A stretch of DNA of 63,382 bases, filler included, from Octopus bimaculoides (lineage: Eukaryota): the NCBI RefSeq assembly GCF_001194135.2. It is 6 parts of 6 records of this genome, joined end to end, with 100 filler letters (N's around TTAATTAATTAA, not from the genome) between each part and the next. Parts side by side here need not be neighbours in the genome. Positions count along the whole stretch, not along the records: positions 45,934 to 55,361 come from NC_068988.1; 5 more parts are not named here. One strand, written 5' to 3'. Every line of letters begins with the position of its first letter. The stretch's first letter is position 1. Shown piece by piece: positions 10,666 to 55,361 of the stretch. The position numbers and the translations under genes are program-made. The notes under the pieces were generated by a model that ran no database searches, had not been told where the DNA came from, and saw only the letters and a program-made list of their open reading frames with translations.

Positions 10666-12254
10666 TTACCTAAACATATACACATACATATATGTATGTG
10701 TGTGGATATTTTATTGTGTAATTTCATATACGTTTTTACGTTTTTTCTCTCTCTATATTCAGGGTGTTTTTCTTTTATTTCATATATTATAATCATTTGC
10801 CGCCATCATCCCCTCTGGTACTAACAATCTCTCGATTGTATGTGCGTGTGTGTGTGTGTGTGTGCGTGTGTGTGTGTGTGGTTATCGTCTTAAATTCAGG
10901 TTATCATCTTAAAGCTTGTTTTAAGAACGTGGGGGTGACTTAGTCTCGAGAGTAGAGTCAGATTCATTACAAGCTCCGTGTCGAAACTTCAAGTTTCCAC
11001 TCGAGGCCATGAATATTTTCAGCCACCATGTAATTGACCTGCGGATTAGTCTATCGGTTCCCATATCAGCACCCTTCTATATGAGGGTATACACATGCAT
11101 TCAGATTTATTCATATATGTTTGTATATGTATATTTTATATCTGTGTTAATAATGACGTAGCATCTACTGTATAACTGAGGAGGTTATGAAACAGCTGTA
11201 AGCATATGGAATAAACCTCTACTCTCTCACCTCACTTCTTTTATCTGTTCCAAATACATGCGTGTGTGTGTGTGAGACCCTCAAACGCGTGCATGCTCGC
11301 ACAAATAGTGAGATAGTAAGAGAGAAGGAGGAAGAGAACAGTAAGATGACTGGAGGATTATTTGGCTAAGATTTCTAGCAGGTTCGGCTACTTCATAGTA
11401 GTCGTCTTTGTTTCCTCATACAAAAGTAGACATATGCATGAAACATTAGTTCTAGGGAGATACGAGTGCTATTTCTACGAGGTCTACCCACCACAAATTG
11501 GCCTTCTACATTGACATATACATATAGTAGTTTATAGTGTGCGATTTATGTGATTTAGTTATAGTTTTAGCACTTCAAGATATCGAAATACTTTACTTCT
11601 TTTTAAAAGGCTGACATAAGAGAGAGTGACAATTTTTTTCTTTAATCTTACGCCATTGCACACTCTTCCTTTTCTTTCTCTGTCTATTTTCTCCATGAAT
11701 GTCTCTCACTCTTTTAACAGTCCCTTCATCTCTCTCTCTCTATCTCTCTTTCTCTTTCTCTCAACCTATCTATCTATATTTAATTCTCTCTCTATTCCAG
11801 AGAGAGGCAGAGAGAAAGACAAAGAAAGATTAAAGAGAGAGACAGGAAGGAAGAGAAGAAAAGAGTTTGACGTAACACAAACGTATTTTCGAATCTTTCT
11901 TTGATTCGACACTAACACTCTATTCCAACATTAAAACGTATATTTTACCAGTATATTTTACCAGTAGAACCGTCTGACTTTCTCCGTACTTTCTTCCTAA
12001 ACAGTACGGAATAATAGATTTGGGCAAATATAATTGTTGCTTTTCAAAATATATTTTGTACGAGCGTTTCGATTTGTACATTCTGAATATAAGGGAGATA
12101 TACACAATAGAGACAGATCGATGTTTAAAATCTTACCTGCTTAAAATTTTATCTAATGAAAGTGAATAGAATATTATGATGTGATCTTTTACGACTACAT
12201 TAAATTATCTNNNNNNNNNNNNNNNNNNNNNNNNNNNNNNNNNNNNNNNNNNNN

Positions 12255-12266
12255 TTAATTAATTAA
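12255..12266. other. Synthetic scaffold-join linker TTAATTAATTAA inside N-runs (also 19234-19245, 45878-45889, 55406-55417, 61455-61466)
   Basis: The same 12-mer, with stops in all six frames, sits inside N-runs five times. The first block is 44 N + 12 + 44 N = 100 nt. Confidence 0.9.
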
Positions 12267-12310
12267 NNNNNNNNNNNNNNNNNNNNNNNNNNNNNNNNNN
12301 NNNNNNNNNN

Positions 12311-12375
<65 letters not shown>

Positions 12376-12750
12376 ATATATATCAGTATATACATGAATT
12401 TTGTGCGTATACATACGTAGACTGTGTTGTAAATGAAATCTCGTATAAATGACACTAATCTGCACCAAGACATAATTCTTATCTACCAGACTTCTTTTGC
12501 ATCCAAGATCCAAGGAGCATTCTGTCTCATTTGACGGGTCGTCTACCCATCTTTCTTCCTCTCTCTCACTCACTCACTCTTTCGCTCTCTATCTATGTAT
12601 CTGTCTATCTATCTATCCATTCATCCAACCATCTAGGTATGTATACATCTATCTGTTTTCCTCTTGCTCTCTCCGTATATGTGTAGACACACACACACAC
12701 ACACACACATACATATGATTGTATACACATGATAGTATATATTTATATTG

Positions 12751-12781
<31 letters not shown>

Positions 12782-13734
12782 TGTATGTACTATATGTGTG
12801 TACGTGCTGTCAGTCATCTACATGCATCTGCCCGAGGTTAACTGTCCTTTGAACAGAATATATATATATGACAAAAGAATATATATATGTATATATATAT
12901 GTATATGTATGTATGTATGTATTTCATTATATATACATGTATATATATAAATACATTCTTCTATATGTTTCAGCCTTGACATATATATACATGCATACAT
13001 ATATATACGTTATACATATATATATTTATAATTGGGTATACGCATATATTCATAATTAGATATATGTCAATATATATATATATATTGTGTCATATTTCTA
13101 TCTATCTGTCCGTCTGTCTATNNNNNNNNNNNNNNNNNNNNNNNNNNNNNNNNNNNNNNNNNNNNNNNNNNNNNNNNNNNNNNNNNNNNNNNNNNNNNNN
13201 NNNNNNNNNNNNNNNNNNNNNNNNNNNNNNNNNNNNNNNNNNNNNNNNNNNNNNNNNNNNNNNNNNNNNNNNNNNNNNNNNNNNNNNNNNNNNNNNNNNN
13301 NNNNNNNNNNNNNNNNNNNNNNNNNNNNNNNNNNNNNNNNNNNNNNNNNNNNNNNNNNNNNNNNNNNNNNNNNNNNNNNNNNNNNNNNNNNNNNNNNNNN
13401 NNNNNNNNNNNNNNNNNNNNNNNNNNNNNNNNNNNNNNNNNNNNNNNNNNNNNNNNNNNNNNNNNNNNNNNNNNNNNNNNNNNNNNNNNNNNNNNNNNNN
13501 NNNNNNNNNNNNNNNNNNNATTTCGAGATAATCTCTTGTCTCAATATCGAGAATGTTCGGTGATATAATGCGACTCGTGTCGGTTGTCAATAAATAGAAC
13601 AGGGGGCGCTGGAGCTTGTTGTTGTTGTTATTGGTGGTGGTGGTGGTGATGGTGATTGTGATGGTGTCATGGCTAAGTTTAAATTTGGAAGCAGAGTTTT
13701 ACTGCGGGCGGAACGGAGCCAAAATTTAGGAACT

Positions 13735-44925: not shown

Positions 44926-47182
44926 ATATACCCCACATAATTGTGTTTCATTTTTCTTTACAAGAAGGATCCTCGATCTATAAAATAAGGCTTTAGAAAG
45001 ACTCGCATGACGGAGAACGCATGTTTTTAGTTTGTGACAATATCATAGCTTAAATTACTGAACTTTATACAGGGGCCATTTTTATTACAGATCTTATATA
45101 TATTGATTTCAAAGCTGTGAACAATTCCAGCAATTTTGAGAGAAGGGATAAGCCATATTTCATCGACCTCGGTGTTCAAATGGTACTTATTTTATTGACC
45201 CCCGACAGCATTTGAACACAGAATGTAAAGTTGGAAGAATGCAGTTTAGCATTTTCCCCCTCACGGTTACGATTCTACCAGCTCACCACTTTAGATATAT
45301 ATATTGACACAAGGTAATACTCATTTAAAATGTTTATAGAAATCTACAGAAAATTGGATATATCATTTACACTGTTTACACATTTACACATTTACACTTA
45401 TTTATTTCAGTGTTATTGCGTGTATAATGTATTCTATCTTTAAAGTTAATTCATTTAAAGGATAATTTTAATATTAAGCAACAAGTTTAAAGGATTCCCC
45501 GCTGAAGAATATATTAGATATGAGCTTATGGATGTTATTAACTAAGTCTCTCTAGATTGTCAGTAGTTTGCTATTCATATCAATTTAATACATTTCTTTA
45601 TATACTCTCTTTTCTCATTTACTTGTTTCAGTCATTTGACAGTGGCCATGCTGGAGCACCGCTTTAGTCGAACAAATCGACCCCAGGACTTATTCTTTGT
45701 AAGCCTAGTAGTTATTCTATCGGTCTTTTTTGCCGAACCGCTAAGTTACGGGGACGTGAACACACCAACATCGGTGTTTTCAAGCGATGCTGGAGGGACA
45801 AACACAGACACACACATACATATATATACATATNNNNNNNNNNNNNNNNNNNNNNNNNNNNNNNNNNNNNNNNNNNNTTAATTAATTAANNNNNNNNNNN
45901 NNNNNNNNNNNNNNNNNNNNNNNNNNNNNNNNNGATCTTGTATATATGCATGTGTGTGTGTATATATATGTGTGTATGTGTGTGTGTGTGTGTACATATG
46001 TATGTATATAAATAGCTAAGCAAGCTAAACAAACCATCAGATTTCATCATGTTACACTTCCAAACAGTTACAAATATTTACGCTTACGGAATCAAGCAAC
46101 AAACACATGTCTATAGCATTCAATTAGGCATGGCAAATAAACAGTTGTAATCTCAGCAAGAATCTTCACTTAGCTATTCACATCATTGATTTCACTGAAC
46201 GAAAGAATGCAAAATATTTTTTCATAAAAAGCTTTGCAAAAACAAAAGAAACGTCTGCATGAAAGCAGTGTCAAAATGGCGGATAACAACCACGACACAG
46301 ATATGGATGAAATGGCGTTGATTTCTGCTGCTGACGTAATATTATGACGTCATGGCACTGACGGGTTTATATTTGTTCCAATAATTACCTGCGTTTTTTT
46401 TCTTCTTTGTTGAGTACTGTATGGCTGTTTTCATTGTTATGTGTTTTTGTTTTCGTAGTTCTTGGTTAAGTTGCTCCTATATATTGCTTATGCCATCATT
46501 CTACTCACCTTATCTCACTATATATATGTATTCGTGCGTATGAGCGTCCGCGTCTATGTATGTGTGTGTGTGTGTGCATGCGTGTGTAGAAATATATATA
46601 TATACAGATGTATTGATTGATAAGCAGTTATATATATAGGTGACAGATTTGTATATGCATGAGTAAGTACGTATGTGTATATACGTATATATGCATATAC
46701 GTAATCATATATATATATATGTATGTATTTATATGTATATACATGTATATTTATATATATATACATTTACATATGTATTTATATATATATATATACCTTT
46801 ACATATTTATATATGCATATGTATATGTATATATATATATATATATATGACCATCCCCAAGTACAACAATATATATATATATATATATAACTAAAAATAT
46901 GTGACACTTATTCCTAGGAATAAAGGAAATTCATCTGTTTACATAATATCGAGGTATCTTTCTTTCTTTTGTTGTCCTTCCTATCAATATATATATATAT
47001 ATATCGTACATAATGAGCGAGGGATACAATGAAAACAAAAGAAGGGCCTATACATAAAAACTGTTGCACATTCTCTATTTAAATAGGCTTTGGTCGGCCC
47101 GAGGCTATAGTAGAAGACACTTGCCCAAGATGCCACGCACTAGGAATGAACCCGGAACCATGTGGTTGGTAAGCAAGCTACT

Positions 47183-47808
47183 TTATTTCATTTCAATTTG
47201 CCATAAAGGCAGTACACAGAGAGTAGCTACGGGCTGGACAAAAACATTAATGAGATGAAATGGATGATAAATATGATGGTATAATGAGAGAAGGCAAAAG
47301 CCGCCCGCCGAACTTTGCTTCTCTATAACACTCGTCTTTATAAAATTAAATTTTCACATTGAGCCTATGAACCTCGTGCATAAAAAGTCATAAATTAAGG
47401 CATTTGCCTCTTACGATTTTTCATTACACAATATGAGGCACTCGTCCTCTTAGGTTTTTTCGCCCGATATAGCCTTCGCTTCTCTCAAGCAAAACGATGG
47501 GTCTGGGTCGGGCCACTTTTCAATACTGAATTCGCCGAGGGGGAAGGAATTCATCAACGCACTTATGTGCCTACTCGACACGACCTCCGCAGACACCTGC
47601 AGAGGCTAGTCCGGATCCTTAGTACAGGTGAGGACTCCCTCTCTCTGACGCTTCCTTTTATTCACAAATTTCTGCAGGGCCCCTCCCTTTCGGAATAGGA
47701 TTAGCCGATCCTTTTCCTCACAGGGTGAGCCCACAGCTTCTACTGTCGGCGGCACAATTCCCGCCGACCTGCTTTCCTCCGTTGGTGGCACAATTCCCAC
47801 CAACGGAG
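47183..47808. mobile_element. Unclassified 626-bp insertion splitting a SINE family 1 copy
   Basis: The flanks rejoin to AAGCAAGCTACT|TACCACACAGCCAC, matching the uninterrupted copies near 5460-5490 and 54035-54068. Confidence 0.8.
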
Positions 47809-48221
47809 TACCACACAGCCACTCCTGCGCCTACACATATAAAATACATACATGAATGTATACACACGTGCATACCTCAATACATGCTTTTACAAACTCA
47901 TGAAGCACATATATTAAGGTGATGTTGTTGTAGTTATATTGTTATCTAAGATGAAAAGCCCATTAAAAAAATATATAAATCTATGCTGAACACTTCGGTG
48001 AACGAAATAGATTCTATTGTCTTAAACTCCGTGATTTTCATATCATCTTTTTCGATCTGAGCAGCTTCTGCTTTACAAATCTTCTTGCAGAAATTACGAA
48101 AGATAAATAAAAAAGAAAAAAATGGAAAAGAAAATTCGATGTATAAAAAATGAAAGAGATAAAAAAGAAATGATAAGATTAAATTAAAAATATATATAAG
48201 GGAGAAGAATGAGAATGGAGC

Positions 48222-48279
48222 AGAAGAAGAAGAAGAAGAAGAAGAAGAAGAAGAAGAAGAAGAAGAAGAAGAAGAAAAA

Positions 48280-48330
<51 letters not shown>

Positions 48331-48525
48331 AAAAAAGAAGAAAAAGGAAAAGAATGAGTACGAGAAGAAGAAGAAGAAGAAGAAGAAGAAGAAGAAGAAG
48401 AAGAAGAAGAAGAAAAGAAGAAGAAGAAGAAGAAGAAGAAGAAGAAGAAGAAGAAAAAGAAGAAGAAGAAGAAGAAGAAGAAGAAGAAGAAGAAGAAGAA
48501 GAAGAAGAAGAAGAAGAAGAAGAAA
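48222..48525. repeat. (GAA)n/(GAT)n homopurine-rich microsatellite
   Basis: Directly visible. Confidence 0.95.
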
Positions 48526-49160
48526 TAGTGATGAAGAAATCGTAATCTATTTTCGAAAGATTTCCTAGAATTTCTGGTGCCATTCTTATTGGTTTATTTA
48601 ATCAGAAACCAAATATTTCGGAGCAAAATTACTTCCATGGCCGTTCTTATTTTCGTATCTTGATGCTTTCATTAATTATTACTGATTGTCTTTCTTGATT
48701 GAGCTCTTCAGACATGAATTAGTAAACAAGACAAGGAAGCCAAGTGATATAAATAAATAAATAAATGAATGAATAAAAAAATAAATAAAAATTGAAACTA
48801 AATTATATGAGCGAAATATTGAAAAAAAAAAACGGAACATGCCCACACATACATACCCCCCCACATATATATATATACATACATACATGCATACATACGT
48901 ACATATATACATACGCACATAATACATGAACGCATCCATCCATCCATACATACTTAAATAAAACAAAGTTAGCTTTAGAGAATCAAGATTTTGACTAAGT
49001 TTTTAACTCCATCATTATTTTAATCTTATTCAATCTCTATCACACACGCACACACACACACACACACACATACACACACACATACATAGACACTCATTTA
49101 TTTATGTGAGAATGAGGACACATGTTCGTGTGTATATAATTGCATGTGTGTATACATGTA

Positions 49161-50097
49161 CGAGGGGTGTATGAAAAGTTTTGAGCCTAACCTAGAAACG
49201 GGGCTGCTAGATAGCTGAAGCAATTTTCTCTGGTAAGTACAGTCTTTTCGGAATATTCTTGCTCATTTTCATGATTCTGGAATTGTTTCTTTTCTCTTTG
49301 CAAATTTTTGAATAAAAAAGTGTCGAGGTTCCAAGCAAAATGGAGGAAACTGAGTATCGTGCTGTCATAAAGTAGCTTCATTTGAAAGGCATGACTCCAT
49401 CAGAAATCCATGAAGATATGGTGAGAACCTTAACAGACAATGCTCCTTCATATGCAACAGTCAAATGCTGGGTAAATGAATTCAAGCGTAGCAGGGAGAG
49501 TGTGGAAGATGATCTCAGACCAGGGAGACCTCCAACTGCAACCACCGAGGACAACCTTGACCTTGCTCTTAGTATGATAATGGAAGATCGTCGAATATCA
49601 TGTCGCCAGATAGCCGAGAGACTGGGCATCTGAACTGAAAGAGCAGACAACGTGACAAAAGAACTTGGGTTCTCAAAGATTTCTGCAAGGTGGGTCCATC
49701 GCCTTTTGACTCCTGAACAGAAACGCACCAGGTGCACTTTGTCCACGAGCAATCTGGGACTGTTTGAAGCTGATGAAGGGAAATTTCTTGCTCGTTTCAT
49801 TACTATGGACGAAAGTTGGGTCCATCACTACCAGCCTGAAACCAAAGAACAATCAAAGCAGTGGAAGCACACATCTTCTCCTACCCCAAAGAAGGCCAGG
49901 GTCATTCCTTCAGCTGGCAAAGTCATGGTGTCAGTTTTGGAGGATTCTCAAGGTGTCTTGCTGATCGATTACCTTGAAAAGGGTCACACCATGACAGAGC
50001 TGTATTATTCTCAGCTATTGAAAGGCCTCCAAGAAGCAATCAAAGAAAATGGCCGGGAATGCTCACCAGAGGGAGTCCTTTTTCATCACGACAATGC
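49161..50097 (+). mobile_element. Mariner (Tc1/mariner) transposon with pseudogenised transposase, 3' part lost in a gap
   Basis: TA followed by the terminal repeat CGAGGGGTGTATGAAAAGTT. The reading frame from ATG 49340 gives APSYATVKCWVNEFKR (HTH), WVHRLL, TMDESWVHHYQPETKEQSKQW and FHHDN, with in-frame stops at 49373 and 49631. Confidence 0.92.
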
Positions 50098-51135
50098 NNN
50101 NNNNNNNNNNNNNNNNNNNNNNNNNNNNNNNNNNNNNNNNNNNNNNNNNNNNNNNNNNNNNNNNNNNNNNNNNNNNNNNNNNNNNNNNNNNNNNNNNNNN
50201 NNNNNNNNNNNNNNNNNNNNNNNNNNNNNNNNNNNNNNNNNNNNNNNNNNNNNNNNNNNNNNNNNNNNNNNNNNNNNNNNNNNNNNNNNNNNNNNNNNNN
50301 NNNNNNNNNNNNNNNNNNNNNNNNNNNNNNNNNNNNNNNNNNNNNNNNNNNNNNNNNNNNNNNNNNNNNNNNNNNNNNNNNNNNNNNNNNNNNNNNNNNN
50401 NNNNNNNNNNNNNNNNNNNNNNNNNNNNNNNNNNNNNNNNNNNNNNNNNNNNNNNNNNNNNNNNNNNNNNNNNNNNNNNNNNNNNNNNNNNNNNNNNNNN
50501 NNNNNNNNNNNNNNNNNNNNNNNNNNNNNNNNNNNNNNNNNNNNNNNNNNNNNNNNNNNNNNNNNNNNNNNNNNNNNNNNNNNNNNNNNNNNNNNNNNNN
50601 NNNNNNNNNNNNNNNNNNNNNNNNNNNNNNNNNNNNNNNNNNNNNNNNNNNNNNNNNNNNNNNNNNNNNNNNNNNNNNNNNNNNNNNNNNNNNNNNNNNN
50701 NNNNNNNNNNNNNNNNNNNNNNNNNNNNNNNNNNNNNNNNNNNNNNNNNNNNNNNNNNNNNNNNNNNNNNNNNNNNNNNNNNNNNNNNNNNNNNNNNNNN
50801 NNNNNNNNNNNNAATTAAGCCGGACTGCTGTAAGCATGATTCGATCCTGAAAATAAAATTAAGTTGAACTACCGTGACCAGGATTCCAAACCTATGTTAC
50901 CAAGGGCAGAAAATGGGGTCCTATCCGCTAGAGGGTCACAAGCATTTCTCCAAATATATACCTATGTTTAGCCATATACGCAATATAGGTCCAGAGAGTA
51001 AGGGCAAGCAACTGTCCCCAAAACACCCTAAAAGACAGAAGATCCAAACATTTCACTTTTCCCCTTATTTTTACATTCTTCTAAGCAGCGCCTTCACCCA
51101 TAACTATATTTAGAAGAACGGTAAATCTTAAATGC

Positions 51136-51137
<2 letters not shown>

Positions 51138-51177
<40 letters not shown>

Positions 51178-51317
51178 CAGTAGTTGTAGTAGTAGTTGTT
51201 GTAGTAGTAGTAGTAGCAGTAGTTGTAGTAGTAGTTGGAGGGGCTTGTGTTGGCGGTAGTAGCAGTAGTAGTTGGGGTGGTGGTTGTGATGGCGGTAGTA
51301 GTAGTAGAAGTAGTAGT

Positions 51318-51355
<38 letters not shown>

Positions 51356-51445
51356 TAGTAGTAGTATGAAAATTTGGGAGGTTCATGGATGCTTCTAAAC
51401 TACCAGAGATAAAGAAAAGAAAAAGAGCGCAAATCAGACTCCTCC

Positions 51446-51497
<52 letters not shown>

Positions 51498-51530
51498 TGG
51501 TGTTGGTGGTGGTGGTGGTGGTGATGATGA
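51138..51530. repeat. Compound (TAG)/(CAG)/(CTG)/(GAT)/(GGT) trinucleotide arrays
   Basis: Directly visible. Confidence 0.9.
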
Positions 51531-51728
51531 TGGTTCGTTTCTCCAAATACTTTTTCGGGGTTATAGAGTGTACGATATACATATAAACAAACATACATTT
51601 CAGTATGCACACACGCACACACACACGCACACAAGCGCACACATACACACGCACACGCACATACAATTCCAACACACACACATTCTTTCTCTCACAATCT
51701 ATCTATATCATAAACATATAAAATATAA

Positions 51729-51774
<46 letters not shown>

Positions 51775-52522
51775 CACATGTACACTAGTGATTCTCGAGA
51801 TTAGCAGGTGTTTTCCTTCGCCCAAACTCTCCCACCCACATCTCACCCTTTCTAGGCCTCCACCCGTTTTACTCCTCTCACCCGATGTCAGGCAGAAACT
51901 TTGAACGGGTGTTACCAAATATCTATGAACTTAGCCATCATCAAACTGGCATCAGGCAATACATATATACATACATACATGCTTATATATATACATACAT
52001 GTTTATATACAAACATAAATACTTATATACATACATACATACATACATACATACATACATACATACTTATTTACATTCATACAAAAATACATACATACAT
52101 GCATACTTATATACATATATACATGCTTATATACATTCATAGTTATATACATACATATATACTTCTATACGTACGTACACAATTTCATACATACATACTC
52201 ACATACATACATAATTCCATATATATGCACATATATGTTTATATATACATATATTGGCATACACACACACACAAATTCATCCATATATGCGTATATATTT
52301 CAACGTTATATATTCATATATCTACATGCATCTATGTCTATACACACATATAGTTCCGCATACNNNNNNNNNNNNNNNNNNNNNNNNNNNNNNNNNNNNN
52401 NNNNNNNNNNNNNNNNNNNNNNNNNNNNNNNNNNNNNNNNNNNNNNNNNNNNNNNNNNNNNNNNNNNNNNNNNNNNNNNNNNNNNNNNNNNNNNNNNNNN
52501 NNNNNNNNNNNNNNNNNNNNNN

Positions 52523-52575
<53 letters not shown>

Positions 52576-52909
52576 CATGTGTGTCTATGCTTGTATGTTT
52601 GTATGTAGGCATGTAGACGGTCGAGAAGAATGACTAGCAAGACAAGGATGGCGGCTGAGGCACACAGAAACGCACGTGCGCCTTGTATGTCATGCCTTTA
52701 ATTGTTAATCTTACTCGCATACATAGAGAGACAGCAACTGTGCACTCACACAAAAACACACACAAATACTATCACACACACACATGCACACACACACTCA
52801 CAAACAAACCTGTTTATATGTATACACACACACGTATATATACCTCATACACTTCATTCCTATATACATCTTGTATATGCTTATACCTCTATAGTCATAT
52901 ATATATATA

Positions 52910-53221
52910 CCTCAGCTCTTCAATGCCCTGCCAAAACATTTGAGAGACATGCAAGACATGGATGCGGAGGTCTTCAAGACAAAACTTGACGCTTTCCTCT
53001 CCACGATACCAGACGAACCAATGGCTCGTAATGACACGCAGTTTAGGGCAGCGATGTCAAATTCTCTCATACACCAGATGTGCCATCAAAACTCTTGATT
53101 GGACCATGTCAGGTGGGGGAGAAGAGCCATGCAAGGAACGTGAAGAGAGCACAGCATAAAGACAGAAAATCACGGTGGTGCACCAGCATGACCGCAGCCA
53201 CTTGACTGAAACCCATAAATA
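52910..53221 (+). mobile_element. CR1-clade LINE 3' end (ORF2 C-terminus, 3' UTR and tail)
   Basis: Encodes QLFNALPKHLRDMQDMDAEVFKTKLDAFLSTIPDEP...AAMSNSLIHQ and ends GGTGGTGCACCAGCATGACCGCAGCCACTTGACTGAAAC. Confidence 0.85.
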
Positions 53222-54067
53222 NNNNNNNNNNNNNNNNNNNNNNNNNNNNNNNNNNNNNNNNNNNNNNNNNNNNNNNNNNNNNNNNNNNNNNNNNNNNNNN
53301 NNNNNNNNNNNNNNNNNNNNNNNNNNNNNNNNNNNNNNNNNNNNNNNNNNNNNNNNNNNNNNNNNNNNNNNNNNNNNNNNNNNNNNNNNNNNNNNNNNNN
53401 NNNNNNNNNNNNNNNNNNNNNNNNNNNNNNNNNNNNNNNNNNNNNNNNNNNNNNNNNNNNNNNNNNNNNNNNNNNNNNNNNNNNNNNNNNNNNNNNNNNN
53501 NNNNNNNNNNNNNNNNNNNNNNNNNNNNNNNNNNNNNNNNNNNNNNNNNNNNNNNNNNNNNNNNNNNNNNNNNNNNNNNNNNNNNNNNNNNNNNNNNNNN
53601 NNNNNNNNNNNNNNNNNNNNNNNNNNNNNNNNNNNNNNNNNNNNNNNNNNNNNNNNNNNNNNNNNNNNNNNNNNNNNNNNNNNNNNNNNNNNNNNNNNNN
53701 NNNNNNNNNNNNNNNNNNNNNNNNNNNNNNNNNNNNNNNNNNNNNNNNNNNNNNNNNNNNNNNNNNNNNNNNNNNNNNNNNNNNNNNNNNNNNNNNNNNN
53801 NNNNNNNNNNNNNNNNNNNNNNNNNNNNNNNNNNNNNNNNNNNNNNNNNNNNNNNNNNNNNNNNNNNNNNNNNNNNNNNNNNNNNNNNNNNNNNNNNNNN
53901 NNNNNNNNNNATACGACGGTCTTCTTTCAGTTTCCGTCTACCAAATCTACTCACAAGCTTGGTCGGCCCGAGGCTATAGTAGACACTTGCCCAACGTGCC
54001 ACGCAGTGGGACTGAACCCGGAACCATGTGGTTGGTAAGCAGGCTACTTACCACGCAGCCACTCCTA

Positions 54068-54116
<49 letters not shown>

Positions 54117-55244
54117 ATATATATATATATATATACATGCATGTAAATAAATTTATTTTAAACAATTACAAGTTTTTCAAATTTCGGTGCATTTTCAACA
54201 ACAAATTTGCCTATATTTGTCATCTGACTCCGGCCATGCTGGAGCACCGCATTTAGTCGAAGAAATCGACTCTAGGATTTTTTCTTTGTAAACCTAGTAC
54301 TTATCTTATCGGCTATTTTTTGCCTAACCGCTAGTTTACGGGGACGTAAACACACACACATACAAATATACACACGCATATTCACACACACACATACACA
54401 CATACACACACACATGTTTGTATATAAATCTATATACCACTTACGCACACAGTTTCCCTCTTCCCAATTCACTCACAAGAATATTACTGGACTCGCGCCT
54501 ATAATAGACGACATTTACCCAAGGTATCTTGCAGTGGGACTGAACCCGGATCCATATTGTTGCAAAGCGAGTGTGTTAACCACAGGCAATAAGGTTTTCT
54601 TTCTTTCTTTCTCAATTATTTCATTTAATGTAAAGAAGCAAAGGATCGATAAAATAAGTACCACACTTAACAAAAAATAGCAGTTTTGGGGTCAATTACA
54701 TTCGACTAAAAATCCTGCAAGGTGGTGTTCCAGAATGGCCGCAGTCTAATGACTGAAAGAAGAACAAGACAAAGCACAAAAGATTCCTGGAACTTAAATG
54801 GCAAAAGCTATGAAGGATTACATCGTGTCGAATTATCGAAATTTTTGGCGTATTTTCACGGTTTCCCTTCAAGATCGTATTTGCCAAGTGCGTGTTTTCT
54901 GATCCCTGTTCATGCCTATGCCCACCCCGACCGCAAGCCGTTCCAGATTATCAGTTAGACATTTAGTAATGTCAACAAGTGCAGCAATGACTAAGGCTAG
55001 AAAATGTATATTATTCATCTTGATAATGAAATTCTAGTTTTTCGAAACAGCTGGCCGTAGATATTATCTTTCGCACACACTCCCATGCACACGTATACAC
55101 ATGCACGCAGACGTGTGAGAAGTGTGAGAGTGTGTGTTTGTGTGTTCCTTTTTACATATGTATACACGCATATGTACATACATAGATATGTACATAAACA
55201 TTTGGGCATAAATATATATATATGTGTACACACACACACACACG

Positions 55245-55321
<77 letters not shown>

Positions 55322-55324
55322 ATG

Positions 55325-55361
<37 letters not shown>

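Follow-up and report, generated by a model that had tools for sequence, protein, structure and literature searches.

A candidate target-specific retroposon in the head of an octopus SINE, with twin hairpins in its coding remnant

Closest described systems and the octopus insert

Target-specific elements that lack long terminal repeats (non-LTR elements; e.g. R2/R8/R9, R1, NeSL, Utopia and Tx1L) cut the bottom strand of their target exactly, whereas the top-strand cut varies, and transposons are among their targets (PMC5035012). The system compared with them here is a 626-bp insert of Octopus bimaculoides that interrupts a short interspersed element (SINE) in the window, i.e. the whole analysed stretch of 63,382 nucleotides, filler included. 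The insert is best read as a dead, 5'-truncated copy of an octopus retroposon family whose sense strand is the minus strand and which integrates at one SINE position by target-primed reverse transcription (probability roughly 0.6). With target-specific non-LTR elements this family shares a 3' junction fixed to a single nucleotide, a harmless, repeated target present in many copies, independent copies, a 5' junction that varies with or without a short duplication, 5' truncation, the lack of terminal repeats, and a conserved, structured 3' untranslated region (UTR) without poly(A). It differs from them in that its 1.9-kb copy holds no reverse transcriptase or endonuclease, in its orphan protein, in a twin hairpin inside the open reading frame (ORF), and in its target, the head of a SINE. 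No report of a SINE-head target was found in the literature searched, which was not covered exhaustively.

A second group for comparison consists of retroposons that depend on long interspersed elements (LINEs), namely SINEs and half-LINEs (e.g. HAL1). HAL1-type elements keep one ORF that does not encode reverse transcriptase. The octopus element resembles this group in being short, in lacking reverse transcriptase and in having a conserved 3' end possibly recognised by a partner LINE; it differs in having no known partner LINE. SINEs do not code for protein, are usually under 700 bp and have a pol III head derived from tRNA, 5S, 7SL or snRNA. From them the octopus element is further set apart by its 1.9-kb length, by its ORF, and by the absence of any transfer RNA (tRNA), 5S or 7SL match in either the insert or the longer copy (Rfam, ARAGORN). 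The 3' ends of stringent-type LINEs of the L2/CR1 clade (e.g. UnaL2) consist of a stem-loop and short repeats. The octopus element has a comparable conserved 3' UTR stem-loop (47287-47324) and terminal sequence, likely a recognition signal. Its terminal TGAAATGAAATAA, in contrast, is not a variable repeat (the longer copy has TCAATGAAATAA). The TGCC/GGCA stem-loop that the initial annotation placed at this end is neither significant (z -0.8, 40 of 200 shuffles as good) nor kept in the second copy.

Helitron2/Helentron elements are defined by asymmetric or subterminal inverted repeats of 8-18 nt, the 5' end pairing just upstream of the 3' hairpin (PMC3627910, PMC4067079, PMC11417382). The window copy looks like these elements, and like HINE and DINE-1, in its T^T site, its lack of duplication and its end hairpin. 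The octopus element differs in having no inverted repeats and, in the protein searches made, no match to Rep/helicase, which autonomous Helitron2/Helentron partners encode. Its longer copy differs in a 15-bp duplication and in a hairpin that is internal instead of marking the 3' terminus. The paper on HELIANO does not mention octopus.

The occupied SINE and a second copy in Octopus sinensis

The empty site reads GCTACT^TACCAC. When the flanks at 47080-47182 and 47809-47840 are joined, they align without gaps to an intact paralogous SINE (53950-54075), which fixes the insert at exactly 626 bp (47183-47808), with a target duplication of 0 bp and no target bases lost; the only latitude is a 1-nt T ambiguity. 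The initial annotation had described a SINE split without duplication of more than one T, and this alignment bears it out. In sense orientation the integration position is GGTA^AGTAGC, in the A-box-bearing head of the SINE, and the element is co-oriented with the SINE. The position falls between the A-box-like and B-box-like parts of the head (47809-47831 and 47087-47182), and the occupied copy has probably lost its RNA polymerase III promoter spacing. The head looks tRNA-derived by A- and B-box resemblance only; neither ARAGORN nor Rfam makes a call in it. GC content is 54% in the right half of the insert vs 30-35% in its left half and the flanks, in line with what was first noticed. The accompanying claim of raised CpG did not hold, the observed/expected ratio being 0.83-0.91 in the insert vs 0.74-0.89 in the flanks. 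The insert contains no ORF longer than 65 aa.

The intact SINE that provides the empty-site reference spans 53911-54072. At least two other SINE types lie at 54216-54360, 54450-54590 and 54640-54773, and all of these have many matches in O. sinensis. The occupied SINE copy of the window lacks the usual 3' end past ...CCGACCAAAGCC (cf. 53911-53950 and, at the O. sinensis locus L127, 13255-13300).

Octopus DNA was sampled by using the mariner pseudogene at 49122-50097 as a protein query, which led to eight annotated O. sinensis proteins. About 20 kb was fetched around each of the eight and around four European Nucleotide Archive (ENA) matches, for a sample of about 237 kb, nine of its loci being from O. 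sinensis and three from two further ENA assemblies. One related copy was present in this sample, at L127 (O. sinensis CM016867.1, 23.72 Mb). The O. sinensis portion (about 184 kb) was fetched around mariner genes and is an unbiased sample; scaled up, one copy per about 184 kb would mean thousands of copies, although the error on this figure is very wide. The target SINE is occupied in 1 of roughly a dozen copies in the O. sinensis loci fetched.

On the plus strand of L127, which corresponds to the minus strand of the window, SINE positions 1-38 (GGCGCAGAAGTGGCGGTGTGGTAAGTAGCTTGCTTACC) are followed by a 1913-bp element (11244-13156) and by the SINE again from position 24 (AGTAGTTACTTACCAACC...). 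The element occupies the same SINE nucleotide (GGTA^AGTAG) in the same orientation as in the window and is about 1.3 kb longer on the hairpin side. The two copies share their 3' end and are collinear, with 5' extents of 626 and 1913 bp (n = 2). At the SINE, their 3' ends read ...TTTATGGCAAATTGAAATGAAATAA^AGTAGC in the window and ...TTTATGGCAAATTTCAATGAAATAA^AGTAGT in L127, with the common junction ...AATGAAATAA^AGTAGC and ...AATGAAATAA^AGTAGT, respectively; seen from the plus strand of the window, both begin with TTATTTCATT... The 5' junctions differ: the window copy sits between two T's (T^T) with no duplication, and in the L127 copy, at this site too, SINE positions 24-38 are duplicated (15 bp; AGTAGCTTGCTTACC vs AGTAG-TTACTTACC). 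The earlier proposal of a mobile-element insertion into a SINE is supported. The proposal of a LINE/SINE-like 3' end on the minus strand pointed in the right direction. The short-repeat tail attached to it gives way to a fixed terminus, TTTATGGCAAATTGAAATGAAATAA in the window and TTTATGGCAAATTTCAATGAAATAA in L127.

At the DNA level, the copies align only over their last ~155 nt (72-75%) and at the hairpin; the DNA between does not align. Divergence is lower in the SINE flanks (84/98) than in the end of the element next to them (111/153; p = 0.02). Gene-like divergence of the ORFs, this smaller divergence of the SINE flanks and the unlike 5' junctions argue for two independent integrations by two subfamilies, as opposed to a single event that was copied later. 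Orthology of the two loci was considered and rejected: they have no unique flank in common, and the orientation of the neighbouring mariner differs.

Each element has an mRNA-like order of ORF, 3' UTR and fixed 3' end, and no terminal inverted or long terminal repeats were found. Target-primed reverse transcription is favoured because the copies combine an exact common 3' junction with collinear but differing 5' extents, duplications of 0 and 15 bp, this mRNA-like layout, a conserved 3' end and no terminal repeats.

Coding remnant and twin hairpins

The minus-strand frame of the insert (PLVGIVPPTEESRSAGIVPPTVEAV...GEKT) is 37% identical over 112 aa to a frame of L127 (...AGIVPPTVKLTP.DPEYDELLIFFYRGGEVEKLVKEHYEG...; BLASTP, E 3e-14). 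Outside the hairpin, identity at codon positions 1, 2 and 3 is 0.51, 0.64 and 0.32, the third being saturated. Near the hairpins, ungapped tblastx cannot tell sense from antisense, and a gapped comparison with the hairpins removed took its place. With both hairpin units taken out, the Smith-Waterman score is 83 for the sense frame and 55 for the best antisense frame, and the maximum over 300 shuffles is 48. Because of this translated homology and codon pattern, the GC-rich right half of the insert is assigned to the last 118 codons of the ORF and the AT-rich left half to the 3' UTR. The codon pattern argues that the element ORFs diverged under selection as genes, not as dead DNA. In L127 the ORF runs to about 265 codons and is broken by frameshifts and stops. 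As the 1.9-kb copy encodes only an orphan protein of ~265 aa and no reverse transcriptase, the family either is non-autonomous or is seen here only as deleted or truncated copies. Fold energies of the two strands (z -6.5 for minus vs z -3.6 for plus; 25 vs 15 G.U pairs) suggest the minus strand as well and are not used as proof.

Database searches gave little. The six-frame translation of the insert has no match among 5.8 billion proteins, exact look-up of 10 insert ORFs found none, and HMMER with a 66-aa stop-free piece against 1.84 billion representatives returned three weak matches, each to a repeat protein of no relation. Little can be read from these negatives about copy number, as unannotated octopus DNA seems barely represented in such collections. 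In the mariner search, every species-named match of at least 80% identity comes from NCBI Octopus sinensis, and the best run-assembly ('lgn') matches reach about 60%. Rfam (E up to 10 for the shown sequence piece, up to 5 for the insert and the L127 element) yields microsatellite noise only and no ribozyme, tRNA or ribosomal RNA, and ARAGORN finds no tRNA.

In the 3' UTR, a consensus fold built from both copies retains the stem-loop at 47287-47324 with all 15 of its pairs, two of which have changed on both sides. This stem-loop is the more conventional candidate for reverse transcriptase recognition. The L127 3' UTR contains a ~175-bp tandem duplication (12622-12795 and 12795-12979; 84% identity) that is not in the window copy.

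Inside the ORF lie the twin hairpins of the window. Hairpin A (47745-47768) has arms GTCGGCGG/CCGCCGAC of 8 bp and hairpin B (47777-47808) has arms CTCCGTTGGTGG/CCACCAACGGAG of 12 bp; both stems are 100% complementary, both enclose the 8-nt loop CACAATTC, and their starts are 36 bp apart. The 74-nt region folds far better than shuffled sequence on either strand (plus z -6.7, minus z -7.7; 0 of 200 shuffles as good), and the chance expectation of a perfect 12-bp stem with an 8-nt loop in 626 nt is ~4e-5. Between A and B two positions differ on each arm, and every difference is compensated. The last base of hairpin B is also that of the insert. The initial description of the pair is confirmed. 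The terminal position of hairpin B follows from 5' truncation, as in L127 the hairpin lies about 1.07 kb inside the element. Each hairpin unit is an in-frame repeat of 36 nt, or 12 codons, that encodes xGIVPPT, and the two lie about 105-117 codons before the stop.

All four stem differences between A and B fall at CpG dinucleotides of hairpin A (CG to TG or CA), and covariation drawn from the two window hairpins alone would be weak evidence. It becomes convincing because L127 supplies a third instance. On its sense strand, the hairpin at 12302-12334 reads ACC-ATTGGCGG GAATTGTG CCGCCAAC-GGT, with a loop identical to that of the window. At the two variable pairs its stem carries T-A and C-G, a third combination, and a single mismatch falls on a decayed CpG (A.C in sense, G.U in antisense). 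When all three hairpins are compared, three pairs have changed on both sides, and 83% of cells are paired vs 25-58% when the partner arm is slid. Between the copies, 7 of 9 hairpin codons agree in their third position, compared with 29 of 91 outside (p = 0.01). None of the synonymous positions of GGA ATT GTG varies among the three hairpins, and the proline codons CCA/CCG change only together with the opposite arm, in three compensated combinations. These patterns argue that the stems and loop are constrained as nucleic acid beyond the peptide they encode, and the hairpin is probably a functional RNA or complementary DNA (cDNA) signal. The earlier suggestion that the repeated structure-plus-loop unit acts as a signal gains support from the third instance in O. 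sinensis, with its identical loop, compensated stem and conserved synonymous sites.

The opposite view takes the hairpins as a by-product of a conserved, tandemly duplicated GIVPPT peptide and of CpG decay, with no function as nucleic acid. The in-frame 36-bp period, the peptide kept in L127, the confinement of all stem differences to CpG and a chance of about 1 in 4 that two hairpins would be compensated by accident all fit it. It does not account for the invariant synonymous positions of GGA ATT GTG or for the covariation of CCA/CCG with the opposite arm, and no peptide motif needs a perfect 12-bp palindrome. The by-product view is accordingly held to be doubtful.

A covariance model of the hairpin finds no further instance in 272 kb. 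The hairpin motif GGYGGCACAATTCCCRCC has at least 120 matches in metagenome contigs and 3 in viral contigs, all limited to 20-27 bp, that is, chance. On its sense strand, the L127 element has five sites with the loop heptamer AATTGTG (11266, 11461, 11485, 11616 and 12313, plus strand), where about 0.3 would be expected (P about 1e-5; 2e-4 when a local duplication of 24 bp counts as one). Four of the five sites are in the 5' non-coding part, and the window sites are at 47753-47759 and 47789-47795 on the minus strand. The 5' end of the L127 element (11244-11256) is a small palindrome, TCATTGTGCATGA, that also holds ATTGTG. The heptamer contains ATTGT, the core of HMG/SOX sites, and it could be a repeated binding motif.

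Table 1. Features of the insert and of the occupied SINE in the window
Feature	Positions	Strand	Basis
5'-truncated element copy (sense = minus): last 118 ORF codons and 3' UTR	47183-47808	-	Collinear with the 3' part of the 1913-bp element L127:11244-13156; boundaries from the empty-site alignment
Target SINE, first 23 nt in sense orientation, GGCGCAGGAGTGGCTGTGTGGTA, with A-box-like TGGCTGTGTGG	47809-47831	-	Alignment with the intact SINE 53911-54072 and O. sinensis copies
Target SINE from position 24 onward, AGTAGCTTGCTTACCAACCACATGGTTCCGGGTTCA...	47087-47182	-	Alignments to the intact SINE and O. sinensis
Hairpin A: 8-bp perfect stem, same loop as B, encodes SAGIVPPT; positional homologue of L127 12302-12334	47745-47768	-	
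Hairpin B: 12-bp perfect stem, sense-strand loop GAAUUGUG, encodes PLVGIVPPTE; 5' base = truncation point	47777-47808	-	
C-terminal ORF remnant, frame from 47806: PLVGIVPPTEESRSAGIVPPTVEAV...AKAISGEKT; internal stop 47606-47608, terminal stop 47450-47452	47453-47808	-	37% BLASTP identity to L127
3' UTR, AT-rich; last ~155 nt conserved between copies, 72-75% identity	47183-47452	-	
Conserved 3' UTR stem-loop AGAGAAG...CTTCTCT with inner helix; candidate reverse transcriptase recognition site	47287-47324	-	Two-copy consensus fold, single-sequence fold
Fixed 3' terminal sequence CTTTATGGCAAATTGAAATGAAATAA, abutting the SINE at AGTAGC	47183-47208	-	Near-identical end and identical junction in L127 (13132-13156, then AGTAGTTAC...)

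Competing explanations, surroundings and significance

In the proposed mechanism, a site-specific bottom-strand nick at the SINE position would prime the synthesis of cDNA on the element RNA, starting at the conserved 3' end, and read-through SINE sequence on that RNA may assist by homology. Second-strand cleavage and 5' joining would be imprecise, as in R2-type and other target-specific non-LTR elements. With less confidence, the twin hairpins are seen as a putative structured binding site on the element RNA for its own protein or for the reverse transcriptase of a partner. The truncation of the window copy at the 5' base of hairpin B may reflect nascent cDNA of the 12-bp palindrome that folded back and released the template. 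Variable 5' truncation and an ordinary target duplication, which the initial annotation had associated with copies of a known LINE whose hairpins are an unconserved local accident, were both found, whereas the hairpins are conserved.

Several points weigh against this reading. Site specificity rests on two copies (n = 2), and the fold-back origin of the truncation point on one case. The mismatch of the L127 stem, A.C in sense and G.U in antisense, does not decide the strand. About 600 bp upstream of the L127 ORF (11244-11830) are AT-rich and non-coding, and because this region precedes the ORF, the longer copy is not simply a 5'-truncated LINE ORF2. Its conceptual protein has no match in Pfam, PDB or two large protein collections, and no reverse transcriptase or endonuclease is seen in the 1.9-kb copy. 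Neither copy has the poly(A) or microsatellite tail found in many non-LTR clades (though not in R2-type elements), the terminal sequence being fixed.

A single original insertion might also explain the two copies, if SINE head, element and SINE body were later copied as one unit (by whole-unit retrotransposition, segmental duplication or ectopic gene conversion) and the window then lost the 5' part by deletion. There are two copies only, each with SINE on both sides, and a mariner copy lies 0.5-1.3 kb from the occupied SINE at both loci. That proximity is probably a coincidence. The two mariners stand in opposite relative orientation, they resemble each other (88%) no more than they resemble other copies (88-91%), and no unique flank is common to the loci. 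The 5' junctions also disagree with a copied unit, as the window passes from SINE 1-23 to hairpin B and L127 from SINE 1-38 to the 5' end of the element, and the deletion would need a left edge that exactly restores the SINE. Together with coding-type ORF divergence (third positions 0.32) and SINE flanks less diverged than the element, these points make one shared insertion unlikely.

Still less probable is a plus-strand Helitron2/Helentron rolling-circle element inserted at T^T with a terminator hairpin, or, in a refined form, one that stopped at the internal hairpin as a cryptic terminator. This was one of the two signatures proposed at first, and the window copy taken alone invites it: it lies between two T's with no duplication, ends on a perfect hairpin, and shares its plus-strand 5' end TTATTTCATT... 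with L127. Variable duplications of 7-19 bp have been reported for some Helitron2 elements (PMC3627910). Against it, the asymmetric terminal or subterminal inverted repeat is absent upstream of either hairpin: TTATTTCATTTCAATT has no inverted match near 47700-47776, and the sole partner of the 5' 11-mer lies 55 nt downstream of the 11-mer itself. The L127 hairpin, being internal, is not a terminus, the longer copy has its 15-bp target duplication, and the T^T turns out to be one specific SINE position and not any TT. The mRNA-like layout runs the opposite way, with the hairpins inside the minus-strand coding region, and no frame showed similarity to Rep/helicase in the six-frame or conceptual-protein searches. 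In a further alternative, a site-specific recombinase (Crypton-like or integrase-like) would have moved a DNA element, the crossover core being the 15-bp repeat of L127, common to element and SINE target. This would suit the identical target position, the lack of terminal inverted repeats and the direct target repeat around L127. The window copy, which lacks the repeat and is short of about 1.3 kb, would not arise by recombination, and no recombinase similarity was found in Pfam, PDB or the protein collections; this explanation is highly improbable.

The part of the window around the insert (45934-55361) is AT-rich, with many microsatellites, several SINE copies and a mariner pseudogene, and its repeats are 80-96% identical to O. 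sinensis. The pseudogene encodes a mariner/SETMAR-like transposase with stops (49122-50097, plus strand) and runs into an N gap at 50098; its relatives carry the Pfam domain Transposase_1, and its DNA is 88-91% identical to O. sinensis copies annotated 'protein GVQW3-like'. A frame ...LFNALPKHLRDMQDMDAEVFKTKLDAFLSTIPDEP... at about 52905-53020 (plus strand) appears to resemble the C-terminal tail of invertebrate LINE ORF2 proteins; its 3' UTR, which bears no relation to the insert, enters an N gap at 53222. At 48215-48520, 51137-51370 and 51450-51530, long arrays of trinucleotides, (AAG)n/(ATG)n and (AGT)n/(GCT)n, give rise to spurious long ORFs and to microRNA-like Rfam matches.

In its fullest form, the target-specific retroposon reading would be that of a hitherto undescribed octopus family specific for one nucleotide in the head of an abundant SINE. 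The SINE would serve as a safe landing pad, and the family would have an orphan protein, no reverse transcriptase and a stem-loop pair (loop GAAUUGUG) inside its ORF as recognition signal; this complete picture is put forward tentatively, as possible more than likely. If the insertion sites prove scattered genome-wide, the insert would be no more than a truncated retroposon copy of an ordinary kind lying inside a SINE.

About a quarter of the octopus genome consists of SINEs and LINEs (PMC13282606). Few elements integrate at one defined sequence. Those that do are useful, and show how a parasite can spread without damage to its host. R2-type elements are reportedly under development as tools for inserting DNA at chosen targets (PMC13586686). 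The hairpin offers a compact example of a signal in nucleic acid that overlaps coding sequence. A SINE-landing element present in at least two diverged subfamilies and in two octopus genomes would, if true, add a target class, possibly a new route to site-specific integration for a non-autonomous element, and a marker system for octopus genome evolution.
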